A stretch of 64,000 nt of DNA from Saccharolobus solfataricus P2 (GTDB lineage: Archaea > Thermoproteota > Thermoprotei_A > Sulfolobales > Sulfolobaceae). Made by a program: the position numbers and the translations under genes. Position 1 is the first letter of the stretch. The number at the start of each line of letters is the position of its first letter. The notes under the pieces were generated by a model. That model had not been told where the DNA came from. It saw only the letters and a program-made list of their open reading frames with translations, and did no database searches. Where the stretch lies: the NCBI RefSeq assembly GCF_000007005.1, contig NC_002754.1, one strand, 5' to 3'. Below, in pieces: positions 1,605-4,166 of the stretch.

Positions 1605-1868
1605 TACTATGCTCAAAATTGGACCGAAAGATTTATTACTGAACGCCCTTTTGGAGAACATGAAATAACTTATAGGATAAATTACGGTGAAGATAGTATA
1701 CTAAGAACTTTTAAAGTTAGGTATTTAGGAAAGGAAGGGGATAAGCATAGGGCCTTAATAAAAGAAGGCGTAACTGGTTGTGGAATAAGAACTAGAAGAA
1801 TAGAGAACAAGGAGATATTAATACCAGATAAACTGTATCAGCCTTTACCCTTTACAACAAAGGAGTGA
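1605..1868 (+). pseudogene. Start-less open frame (~87 codons), possibly a decayed upstream part of the archaeocin-like precursor or an unrelated fragment
   Basis: Stop-to-stop frame YYAQNWTERF...PFTTKE*. It overlaps the Cys-rich frame and has no ATG/GTG/TTG start that I could assign. Confidence 0.3.
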
Positions 1869-2160
1869 AAGTGAAGAAGATAAAGATCCAAATCCGATAG
1901 AATGCGAAATATGTAAAGCAATAGTTTCAGTATTATGTGGACTATTAGCTGAAGGAGTAGCTAAAAGTGTGGCATGTGACGAAGCTTGTGGAACAGTTTG
2001 CTTAATATTTGTTGAGGATCCCATTATTTATGATATTTGTGTGGTAATATGTATACCTTCTTGTGATGAACTACTTCAACTAATTATCTCAATAGGAGTA
2101 GCGACTGCATGTGGACTAGGTGGTGAGTATCTATGTCAAAAGGCTGGTCTGTGTTGCTAA
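1822..2160 (+). CDS. Halocin C8-like Cys-rich bacteriocin domain (possibly pseudogenised precursor)
   Basis: The frame is open from 1822: ...SESEEDKDPNPIECEICKAIVSVLCGLLAEGVAKSVACDEACGTVC...YLCQKAGLCC*, with 13 Cys from 1903 on. The CxxCK start and CxKAGLC end resemble halocin C8 (CSACK...CNRAGLC). The first canonical start is GTG 1969, inside the domain. Confidence 0.65.
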   Translation, partial: YQINCISLYPLQQRSESEEDKDPNPIECEICKAIVSVLCGLLAEGVAKSVACDEACGTVCLIFVEDPIIYDICVVICIPSCDELLQLIISIGVATACGLGGEYLCQKAGLCC

Positions 2161-2212
2161 TAGATTTTTTTTAGATATGTGGTTATAAATAGCTAAGGAG
2201 GGAGGGATAGAA

Positions 2213-2776
2213 ATGGAAAGAAAGGGGACAGAAATAGAAAGAAATAAGATATCTTTTTTAAAGTGGCTTGAGCTAACATTATTATTTGTGATTTTGCCTT
2301 CAGTAGTGGCAGTCATACTATCATTCTCAATCCCTTACTATTTATTGCATAACATAACACTAGCAAACACTCTTAGTACAATAATTCCAATAATAGTATT
2401 TGGCATCTCAGTGGCTTATTTTGGCAAGTACCGCAAAAGTCATGGCATTATAACTCCCTTTATGAAAAGAACATCTATTCCAATTTTACCAGATAGTGGA
2501 CAACCAATTGACGAAAAGTATATTAAGAGTTTCGAAGCTGGGCTAAAATTTGTTAAAGGTGAAGAGTATATTAAACGTTTAGCTATGATTGGTATGATGT
2601 ATTTGCAAAATGCCGTTGCTTATGATAATAAAGACCTCTATTTGAAGGCTAAGGAATACTTATCAAAGGCTGAGGAGGCTATGAAGGGAAAGGATGTGAG
2701 ATTTGAGACTAGATTGTTGGTTGATAATTTGAGGAGTAAGATTGAAACGTATAAGTACCGTTTCGGAGAAAGATAA
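2213..2776 (+). CDS. Two-TM membrane protein with helical C-terminal domain; candidate immunity/accessory protein
   Basis: 187 aa with two hydrophobic segments near the N-terminus. A GGAGG-like SD precedes the ATG, and the gene lies directly downstream of the Cys-rich ORF. Confidence 0.7.
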   Translation: MERKGTEIERNKISFLKWLELTLLFVILPSVVAVILSFSIPYYLLHNITLANTLSTIIPIIVFGISVAYFGKYRKSHGIITPFMKRTSIPILPDSGQPIDEKYIKSFEAGLKFVKGEEYIKRLAMIGMMYLQNAVAYDNKDLYLKAKEYLSKAEEAMKGKDVRFETRLLVDNLRSKIETYKYRFGER

Positions 2777-2779
2777 GCA

Positions 2780-2977
2780 ATATCTGGCTAAACTGAGGAG
2801 TTATCTAAATAAAAAGAAAATTCTGAGTATAGTACACCACACGCTTTATGAGAAATTGAGAGAAGAGATCTCATTACCATCAAATATGGTTGAAAACCGT
2901 TATAGAGACGCTGTCTCAATATACAAGGTATGGCATAATAATCCTGACACAGAAAAGACAAGCCTCGCCCCTTCCAG
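2780..2977 (+). pseudogene. tnpB: N-terminal tnpB remnant plus left arm of an IS200/IS605 right-end hairpin
   Basis: LYEKLREEISLPSNMVENRYRDAVSIYKVWHNNP resembles Sulfolobus TnpB N-termini. AGCCTCGCCCCTTCCAG at 2961..2977 is the hairpin arm, whose partner is at 4167..4186. Confidence 0.5.
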
Positions 2978-4166
2978 CGATAGACCCAAAATCATCTTAC
3001 AAAAATAATTCTGATTGAACAATATTAAATTTGTTAAACATAACCAAGTTTATAACAACATTAAGAATTCAAGAAATTGGAAAAAAGGTTTAAAGCGAGA
3101 AAATCGGTATTACCATAAGGGTTTACGGTATGCCAATTCCCTCATTAAACATTCAACAAATAGTGTATAAATTACTTTCCATGATTAACTTCCACGGGAG
3201 GAAGGGAGAGGAAGCTACAAAAACCTCGGTCTCAGCATCATTACACAACGATTCAGTGGAAAAACGTTTCCAAAGCTTACAACGTATCACCACAAACAGT
3301 GAGGAATTACGTTGAAGAACAAGGATTACAAGTAGTGGAAAAATACTGGAATAAGTGAAACAAATCTCACTCGAAACGCTTAAGGACGTGAAGGAGATAG
3401 ATCTATCATTAGATTGGACAACTTGGTACGGAAAACTTGTAGAAGGTTTGGGAAGCTCAGAAAAGGGATACTCGTGGAACTACACAACAACGACGAAATA
3501 CGAGGGAAAAATCCTCATACTCGCCTTCATACCGCAAGTTAATGACAAAGGATGAGATTGTCAAGATCTTGATTGAACAAGTGGTTGCAATGGGATTTAG
3601 GATTAAACTGATAGCACTTGATGCAGGATTTTACACGGTTGAGGTGATAAAATTCATATCCCAGTTCAACTACATTATTGGAGTTCCCGTTAGTGATGTC
3701 AAGATCTACGAGGAGTTTGATGGTGAATATGTTACGAATAGTAAGAGGCGTAGTAAGGGTGAGCAGGTTAAATTTAGGCTGATCGTGTATAGGGAGAAGA
3801 TCAAGAGGAAAAAGAAGGAGGTTGTTTACTTCGCCAGGGGTACAAATCTCGATTTACCCAAGAATAAGGTCTTGGAGTAACAAGGTGAGGAATCCGATAG
3901 AAACGTCTTATAAGAGTGTTAAATCGTTCCTCCCCTTTACGTGTTCAACAAAGTTCATTTTCCGCATGTTAATCTTCTTACTTGACGTGCTCGTTTACTC
4001 CTTGTACACTATCCTCAAGGATAACGTGAAAATGAGGACTTTCAAATCACTAATTTCAAAAAATATTGAAAATATATCTGAGATAGAGATTTATTTAAGT
4101 AAATTGGAGGAAACGCTTACTAATACTACAGGTTTATTTTTAAGGAGGTGATTTTTGGGAGTACCG
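2978..4166 (+). mobile_element. Decayed ISH3-family element (ISC1225-like); transposase broken by frameshifts and stops
   Basis: Fragments NIQQIVYKLLSMINF, LSLDWTT, IALDAGFY and RNPIETSY. Imperfect TIRs CGATAGACCCAAAATC / CGGTACTCCCAAAAATC. Confidence 0.8.

Follow-up and report, generated by a model that had tools for sequence, protein, structure and literature searches.

The window analyzed here, 64,000 nucleotides of contig NC_002754.1 of the archaeon Saccharolobus solfataricus P2, contains, at positions 1617–2160, the decayed remnant of a gene for a halocin C8-like precursor protein of ~219 amino acids (aa) that is intact in other Sulfolobales, followed on the same strand by an intact gene (2213–2776) for a protein with two transmembrane segments (hereafter, 2-TM protein). 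In our assessment, the two genes probably derive from a toxin and immunity pair, of which S. solfataricus P2 has kept the immunity component only. This interpretation draws on the identity of the Cys-rich C-terminal domain of the precursor, the pseudogene state of the window copy, the pairing of the two genes across genomes, the correspondence between their types, and the asymmetric decay of the pair. For the window itself, the implications are modest: a pseudogene next to a gene for a conserved membrane protein, the latter being most likely the only functional content of the locus.

The Cys-rich domain and its gene in the window

The 112-codon open frame at positions 1822–2160 (plus strand) encodes 13 cysteines, all within residues 30–112 of the translation, where the Cys-rich part opens with the motif CEICK and closes with CQKAGLCC. 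The sole mechanical open reading frame (ORF) call in this frame starts with the GTG at 1969 (1969..2160, 63 aa), and the Cys-rich domain reaches 49 codons further upstream, just as the sequence-only reading of this DNA had it. That reading also pointed to a neighboring protein with two membrane segments, and the 187-aa product of the downstream gene indeed contains two hydrophobic segments. The relationship to halocin C8 that it proposed holds as well: the NCBIfam profile TIGR04449 (halocin_C8_dom) aligns with residues 28–111 of the translation over its entire length (profile positions 1–69 of 69), with a score of 24.7 bits (E = 3.6e-5) against the curated cutoff of 24 bits. The window domain is 88–90% identical to the intact domain of protein P0083 from Sulfuracidifex tepidarius and of the Sulfolobales locus L007 (tblastn, residues 118–219 aligned at 1846–2157) and has homologues in other Sulfolobales, the close ones at 82–86% identity and one of a second type, type B (see below), at 58%. 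Given these homologues, and given that a profile of the Sulfolobales family retrieved 19 proteins from 1.84 billion representative sequences, full-length relatives from Thermoplasmatales among them, the domain is not a chance feature.

The gene that encodes this domain in the window is broken. When the intact precursor was compared with the window by tblastn, residues 43–123 aligned at 1617–1862 with 68–70% identity and residues 118–219 aligned at 1846–2157 in another frame, the two pieces overlapping at 1846–1862. At the DNA level, homology to the intact loci starts only at ~1647, which corresponds to codon ~51 (blastn breakpoint and DNA alignment); the first ~50 codons of the precursor are gone. 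No ATG, GTG, or TTG opens either piece, and the frame of the Cys domain has no start codon before 1969, a point that the sequence-only reading had overlooked. Because of the missing start codon, the location of the two halves in different frames, and the absence of the first ~50 codons, the toxin gene of the window is to be considered a pseudogene, and therefore, no active peptide is expected in S. solfataricus P2; for this genome, the antagonistic peptide proposed in the sequence-only reading is not supported. The breakage cannot be put down to sequencing error alone, the loss of the 5′ part and of the start codon being independent of the frameshift. Among the homologues of the 112-aa translation, there are proteins of 145–146 aa, the N-terminal ~60 residues of which match the other frame upstream of 1866.

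It is extremely unlikely that the window copy is still functional, be it via the 63-aa ORF, a 79-aa ORF, or ribosomal frameshifting. The Cys domain is indeed free of stop codons and close in sequence to the intact copies, and the genome annotation calls a 79-aa product (P0005), but the first four conserved cysteines are missing from the 63-aa ORF and the first two from the 79-aa product, whereas frameshifting would supply neither a start codon nor the first ~50 codons.

The window and two other loci, L001 (at ~779) and L009 (at ~3932), lose homology to the precursor at a near-identical codon (~50–52), immediately before the motif PFG(E/D)HEITY, with different sequences upstream.

Intact precursors and their relatives

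Full-length precursors of 219–221 aa are encoded in S. tepidarius (P0083), Stygiolobus caldivivus (P0084), and a Sulfolobales metagenome-assembled genome (L007, 3776–4435); a further intact precursor was identified in locus L043. In the 219–221-aa proteins, the Cys domain (residues 135–219) forms the C-terminus of a larger protein, the 5′ part of which is missing from the window copy. The intact precursor has a mass of 24.3 kDa and combines a basic N-terminal domain (N-domain, pI 8.9) with an acidic Cys domain (85 aa, 8.7 kDa, pI 4.05). In an alignment of 31 sequences, ten Cys columns show no or almost no variation, and three extra cysteines are present in Sulfolobales. Within type A, the ratio of nonsynonymous to synonymous substitution rates (dN/dS) of the Cys domain is 0.02–0.13, which shows that the domain is a selected protein; the N-domain evolves under strong purifying selection in every comparison (dN/dS 0.04–0.09).

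An AlphaFold2 (AF2) model of P0083, built from an alignment of 31 relatives (mean pLDDT 83.8, pTM 0.81), consists of seven long antiparallel strands (residues 7–111), a low-confidence linker (PDKLYQPYPLQQKSEEGKDPNPIE), and five helices (residues 132–214); a first run with 9 close sequences reached a pLDDT of only 52 and was discarded. The intact precursor is predicted to be a signal-less protein in which a beta-rich N-domain is connected by a flexible, hydrophilic linker to a helical, hydrophobic, disulfide-rich C-terminal domain. The hydropathy of the precursor peaks inside the Cys domain, first at residue ~132, and in the hydropathy profiles of the intact relatives, the N-terminus (MPQSLKPKSIKLLHYEEKKDD) lacks a hydrophobic segment that could represent a Tat or Sec signal. 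Pfam contains no family that matches the Cys domain or the precursor. A Foldseek search of PDB and BFVD with the whole-chain P0083 model, in which a domain-level match may be masked, produced nothing significant (best E 0.03–0.05, TM-score <0.3). The two top matches of the family profile among PDB sequences, prosaposin (E = 0.028) and saposin A (E = 0.11), were not significant either, although both aligned from the first CxxC motif; P0083 and P0084 are labeled 'Saposin B-type domain-containing protein' in UniRef, and neither the Cys domain nor the precursor matched SapB in Pfam. A saposin-like, membrane-active fold of the Cys domain is therefore best viewed as a possible lead rather than a result.

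TIGR04449 is matched at E ≤ 0.01 by 26 of the 31 aligned family members, and no other family recurs. The Sulfolobales proteins score around the 24-bit cutoff (19.6–24.7 bits, with the close relatives of the window copy at 19.6–23), but P0089, which belongs to the bridging Thermoplasmatales cluster and is named halocin C8-like by its sources, scores 43 bits (E = 6.6e-11), and because this bridging relative is well above the cutoff, the assignment of the halocin C8-like domain is sound. The founder of the family is a characterized archaeocin, halocin C8 of Natrinema sp. AS7092 (bioRxiv 10.64898/2026.07.27.741052; PMC8628083). With regard to annotation, the domain is not new, as the relatives have already been automatically named 'halocin C8-like bacteriocin domain-containing protein' by JGI and NCBI, whereas the 2-TM partner is unnamed in all sources. 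In addition, halocin C8 homologues from Thermoplasmatales and from one member of Sulfolobales, Metallosphaera cuprina, are listed, without discussion, in Table S2 of bioRxiv 10.64898/2026.07.27.741052.

The full-length relatives from Thermoplasmatales come from Thermoplasma volcanium, Cuniculiplasma (C. divulgatum), and G-plasma. These proteins are homologous to the Sulfolobales precursors throughout, including the beta-rich N-domain (profile E-values from 2e-35 to 4e-20), and are signal-less as well, but share only 30–40% identity with them. All three Thermoplasmatales subfamilies examined have, 23–45 bp 3′ of the gene for the precursor homologue, a gene whose small product (175, 192, and 83 aa) contains two membrane segments near the N-terminus. 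No sequence similarity was detectable between the Sulfolobales 2-TM proteins and these downstream proteins, and an hhalign comparison against two of the latter was not significant, so the partners in the two lineages have the same architecture and position, whereas homology is not demonstrated.

A tyrosine recombinase gene adjoins the precursor homologue in two of the three subfamilies checked. In locus L089 (1520–5255; also in L087, L088, L090, and L091), the precursor homologue is located just downstream of the gene for a 429-aa tyrosine recombinase (NCBIfam XerA-like, E = 4.8e-10); an 80-aa ORF ~2.2 kb beyond the end of the recombinase gene repeats the recombinase C-terminus, and the flanking genes vary between genomes. 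It looks like the Thermoplasmatales cassette is carried by a small integrated mobile element.

The 2-TM gene: pairing, types, and decay

The 187-aa 2-TM protein of the window consists of a short basic N-terminus, two membrane segments (TM1, residues ~13–45, and TM2, ~47–72) connected by the loop HNITLANTLS, and a conserved soluble C-terminal domain of ~95 aa. The distribution of basic residues around the membrane segments suggests that both termini and the conserved C-terminal domain face the cytoplasm. At the position where the relatives have their start codon, the window has ATA (region 2213–2236); the ORF is kept open by an in-frame ATG further upstream, at 2213, which lies within a short insertion and adds 7 residues. 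The homologues of this protein form 75 clusters, almost all from Sulfolobales (Saccharolobus, Acidianus, Sulfuracidifex, Sulfurisphaera, and Stygiolobus), often with two or three copies per genome, and fall into two types, A (~180 aa, including the window copy) and B (~195 aa), that differ mainly in the membrane part, the last ~95 residues being nearly constant. There were no matches to the 2-TM protein in NCBIfam, Pfam, PADLOC, or PDB sequences, and hence, none to a described immunity family. The spacer upstream of the gene, the sequence of which is compatible with a promoter role, has an equivalent in precursor-less loci (alignment of 9 loci including the orphans L016 and L026). The output of a scan for bacterial sigma-70 promoters and terminators was disregarded, the consensus being inapplicable to archaea.

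Every intact precursor gene for which downstream sequence is available, except for that in L043, is followed 45–55 bp 3′, on the same strand, by a 2-TM gene; same-strand adjacency is seen in L007, L011/12, L013/14, the remnant-bearing loci, and the three Thermoplasmatales subfamilies. The types of the two genes match: type A precursors (S. tepidarius and L007) are accompanied by type A 2-TM genes and the type B precursor (S. caldivivus) by a type B 2-TM gene, and wherever a Cys domain survives, its type is that of the 2-TM gene, with no mixed pairs at any locus. Types A and B have diverged primarily in two regions, the Cys domain of the precursor and the membrane part of its 2-TM partner. The two types are 85% identical in the precursor N-domain, 59% in the Cys domain, 36% in the membrane part of the 2-TM protein, and 73% in its C-terminal domain; dN/dS is 0.31–0.35 for the Cys domain between types, 0.45–0.73 for the 2-TM membrane part, and 0.11–0.14 for the 2-TM C-terminal domain. 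A type B 2-TM gene of S. tepidarius, called as two pieces (110 and 44 aa), is located 2 kb upstream of the intact type A pair (L011:3838–4416), and hence, a single genome can harbor different 2-TM types in tandem.

Metagenomes scanned with the 2-TM alignment yielded 71 loci that were pooled with the genome loci. Of the non-redundant loci, 33 had an intact 2-TM gene together with 750 bp or more of upstream sequence, and in these, the precursor was sought within 1.1 kb. Only 3 of the 33 contained an intact precursor; remnants were found in 17, and none in the other 13, a distribution compatible with immunity-only genotypes being widespread. The precursor lesions are independent between loci. The S. 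islandicus precursor contains one stop codon, two frameshifts, and one Cys-to-Arg change; the Cys domain is deleted in Acidianus sp. HS-5 (P0086), Stygiolobus sp. CP850M, and L037; in L022, there is a C-terminal deletion, and in L008, the precursor is heavily decayed. At the second locus of S. solfataricus 98/2 (GCA_000175555.1; L095:1538–3543), the precursor ends exactly at the N-domain boundary (134 aa), with the Cys domain mostly deleted and the 2-TM paralogue P0018 intact; this chromosomal position, beside the AdoMet_dc, ACP_syn_III, and thiolase genes, is common to S. islandicus and S. tepidarius. The synteny of the homologues of the window 2-TM gene thus agrees with the idea of a cognate pair put forward in the sequence-only reading: the gene adjoins the precursor at the intact loci (L043 excepted), matches it in type, and outlasts the toxin.

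Extra fragments of the 2-TM C-terminal domain, located 1–5 kb downstream of the cassette beside VapBC (PIN/MazE) genes in L003 (8631–8845), L006 (11313–11614), and L007 (6184–6381), appear to be the remains of further decayed 2-TM copies. Directly upstream of the precursor, genes for 55–56-aa and 143-aa proteins are present in L011 (5056–5657), L003–L007, L012, L022, L023, L043, L069, and L095, and absent from the window. The 143-aa protein contains an aspartic-protease-like motif (LLDTGS or LPDSGS), its sole family match being Pfam RVP at E = 0.24, with none in NCBIfam or PDB; judging by the motif, it could be the processing protease of the precursor.

In the window, the locus is flanked by a divergent ATPase gene (Table 1) that does not belong to the cassette elsewhere. 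At the start of this gene, there is a near-perfect 29-nucleotide palindrome with 13-bp arms (TACGGTACCGATA..TATCGGTACCGTA, 1408–1436), and the segment 1481–1601 is possibly a repeat element, given its weak resemblance to sequence found, in the opposite orientation, close to loci L001 and L009. On the other side, an 88-aa ORF without a Pfam match (2742–3008) overlaps the end of the 2-TM gene. Part of this ORF (~2845–2950) is ~71% similar over ~106 nucleotides to a Cas12f1-like/TnpB gene in L015 (9800–9905), which suggests insertion sequence (IS) element debris directly downstream of the locus.

Table 1. Features of the precursor and 2-TM locus and the adjacent gene in the window
Feature	Position	Strand	Basis and remarks
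Archaeal ATPase_2 family protein, 360 aa	326–1408	−	Pfam PF01637, E = 1.9e-14; weak C-terminal TrmB-like winged-helix match
Remnant of the precursor N-terminal pro-domain (residues ~43–123 of the 219-aa protein)	1617..1862	+	tblastn, three-frame translation; no start codon
Frameshift lesion, a one-base length difference separating the pro-domain frame from the Cys-domain frame	1840..1850	+	DNA alignment with L007, L011, L022, and L001
In-frame 6-nucleotide insertion in the linker (SESE replaces SE)	~1863..1868	+	protein and DNA alignments
Halocin C8-like Cys-rich hydrophobic domain, 13 Cys	1903..2154	+	TIGR04449; last residue at 2155–2157, stop codon at 2158–2160
A/T-rich spacer with TATA-like TTATAAAT (~2185–2192) and purine-rich GGAGGGAGGG before the 2-TM gene	2161..2212	+	sequence
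Intact 187-aa 2-TM protein, type A, candidate immunity determinant kept as an orphan	2213..2776	+	ORF, hydropathy, homologue alignment, dN/dS

Competing interpretations and known systems

If the precursor and the 2-TM protein are a toxin and its immunity determinant, we infer cleavage and secretion of the precursor, killing, and protection. The precursor would be cut in the linker, and the released, disulfide-locked peptide of ~9 kDa would target related archaea at their membrane or envelope; protection of the cell would come from the 2-TM protein, via its variable membrane hairpin that tracks the toxin type, with the conserved domain, predicted to be cytoplasmic, performing a constant job. 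Several observations weigh against this scenario. The TIGR04449 scores of the Sulfolobales proteins themselves are marginal, the precursor lacks a signal peptide, and transporter genes are absent from the neighborhood. In L001, an undamaged Cys domain is found beside a 2-TM gene cut to 69 aa, and in L002, beside a frameshifted one; in L043, the homology ends right after the stop codon of the intact precursor, with no 2-TM gene directly following. The matching of types could result from linkage alone, because adjacent genes have a common history, and the 2-TM protein may have a role of its own, considering the 13 precursor-less loci among the 33 and the two or three paralogues per genome. Furthermore, the N-domain, which is also kept under strong purifying selection, might confer immunity, as the N-terminal part of the halocin C8 precursor does. 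Because the N-domain is so strongly conserved and often survives deletion of the Cys domain, the downstream gene is not the sole immunity candidate. The proposal of a cognate immunity gene in the sequence-only reading is, accordingly, plausible on the strength of adjacency, type matching, and survival, but not in the exclusive form.

Immunity conferred by the precursor N-domain, in the manner of HalI in halocin C8, with the 2-TM protein involved in export, processing, or anchoring or serving as a receptor, is unlikely, although it is a contender to be taken seriously. Apart from the low dN/dS of the N-domain, the Cys domain has been deleted independently at least three times with the N-domain ORF staying open (L095, P0086 of Acidianus HS-5, and L037), the pTM of the AF2 model is consistent with packing of the two domains against each other, and their charges are opposed, with the basic pro-domain facing an acidic Cys domain. 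However, PF22862 (Hac8_like_N), the Pfam model of the HalI domain, was not matched even at E ≤ 1 by L007, P0083, P0084, or P0087–P0091, and many loci retain the 2-TM gene without any N-domain. Moreover, the 2-TM protein is the better candidate for a type-specific partner, because its membrane part differs strongly between types A and B and the N-domain hardly at all. Another alternative is an intracellular membrane-toxin module involved in addiction or abortive infection, in which the Cys domain would be freed inside the cell, perhaps by the 143-aa protein with the D(T/S)GS motif. Such a module would account for a precursor without a signal peptide, and the 55-aa and 143-aa gene pair, the latter with its aspartic-protease-like motif, is often located directly upstream; the loci are found amid VapBC and other mobile genes, and relatives in Thermoplasmatales lie beside a tyrosine recombinase. 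We nevertheless deem it quite improbable. The loss of the toxin should relax selection on the partner, yet the dN/dS of 0.11–0.14 for the 2-TM C-terminal domain is maintained in dozens of toxin-less loci; that purifying selection continues to preserve the partner once the toxin is gone fits a toxin that arrives from neighboring cells and argues against a purely intracellular addiction module. In addition, there were no PADLOC matches, and the Pfam RVP match on which the protease assignment relies falls short of significance (E = 0.24), with none in NCBIfam or PDB.

Still less probable is a Cys-rich metal-binding, redox, or structural membrane protein of acidophiles, with the 2-TM gene as an unrelated neighbor. 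The 13 cysteines of the domain, the marginal TIGR04449 scores, and the UniRef label of a Cuniculiplasma relative, 'Predicted metal-binding protein', would be compatible with such a function, but the match extends over the full profile of a family founded on a characterized archaeocin, and the downstream 2-TM gene recurs in two phyla. A housekeeping protein would not be expected to lose one domain repeatedly and independently, to exist as two divergent types, or to be highly identical between genera. We favor the toxin and immunity pair. The suggestion of a second class of antagonistic peptides in Sulfolobales, together with an immunity gene, is supported with regard to the family and the pairing, but not for the copy at hand, which is a pseudogene, nor for the uniqueness of the immunity partner.

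So far, apart from one viral toxin, only a single class of Sulfolobales toxins (SulA/B) has been tied to genes. A second system, related to halocin C8, if real, would link the antagonism of salt-loving and acid-loving archaea and would put a heat- and acid-stable, disulfide-rich peptide on offer. The existence of two types with matched partners, combined with frequent toxin loss and partner retention, is in effect an experiment performed by nature on the dynamics of producers and cheaters. The scenario is testable, given the intact loci in the cultured S. tepidarius and S. caldivivus and the partner-only loci in the tractable S. solfataricus and S. islandicus. The 2-TM partner, the two types, and the decay pattern were not found to be described in the literature searched, which did not include Makarova et al. 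2019.

The sulfolobicins SulA and SulB of Sulfolobus acidocaldarius and S. tokodaii are described as subunits of a heterodimer, ~22 kDa each (Ellen et al. 2011, via PMC5733018 and PMC3718332). Like these, the system described here is a proposed proteinaceous weapon against close relatives, and neither family comes with an obvious classical bacteriocin export cluster; no protein named sulfolobicin turned up in the homology searches, which did not include a direct comparison with the SulA/SulB sequences. S. islandicus HEN2/2 reportedly produces a membrane- and vesicle-associated sulfolobicin of ~20 kDa that was never identified (PMC5733018), and ten S. islandicus genomes, from which sulA, sulB, and sulC are absent, yielded no gene for it (PMC3718332). 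It is tempting to speculate, although we would not expect this to be the case, that the cassette is a type-specific killing and immunity system of Sulfolobales and Thermoplasmatales, in which most sequenced strains are immunity-only 'cheaters' and the ~24-kDa precursor is perhaps the HEN2/2 sulfolobicin; the pseudogene state of the precursor in the sequenced S. islandicus genomes examined weighs on the latter link. The Cys domain may resemble the saposin-like protein (SAPLIP) fold in its predicted five-helix, disulfide-rich bundle, in line with the saposin name given in UniRef; unlike SAPLIP domains, it has 10–13 cysteines rather than 6.

In bacteriocin operons, the toxin gene is followed by a same-strand gene for a small membrane immunity protein, the variable parts of the two co-diverge, and orphan immunity genes outlive the toxins, much like the 2-TM genes of the present cassette. 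Unlike bacteriocin immunity genes, the 2-TM gene shows no sequence relation to known immunity families in NCBIfam and Pfam, and its product carries an extra conserved domain of ~95 aa that is probably cytoplasmic. The closest parallel is ProC8, the halocin C8 precursor of Natrinema sp. AS7092 (halC8; Sun et al. 2005, via bioRxiv 10.64898/2026.07.27.741052 and PMC8628083). Both precursors contain an N-terminal domain of >100 aa, then a hydrophilic junction, and a C-terminal, Cys-rich, hydrophobic domain of ~70–85 aa that is matched by TIGR04449 and includes the ten conserved Cys columns. In ProC8, the immunity function resides in the N-terminal part, HalI (bioRxiv 10.64898/2026.07.27.741052; PMC8628083). 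Unlike ProC8, the Sulfolobales precursors have neither a Tat nor a Sec signal, contain three extra cysteines, belong to thermoacidophiles, and are accompanied by a dedicated 2-TM gene downstream, with the window copy being a pseudogene; no halR, halU, ABC transporter, or comparable Pfam families were detected within 6 kb in L011, L014, and L015 or among the window ORFs up to ~6.6 kb. Given that neither a Tat signal nor a HalI domain was detected, and no ABC transporter genes either, the cassette is best described as a variant of the halocin C8 system, and the possible different seat of immunity in this variant bears on how halocin C8 itself is processed and neutralized.

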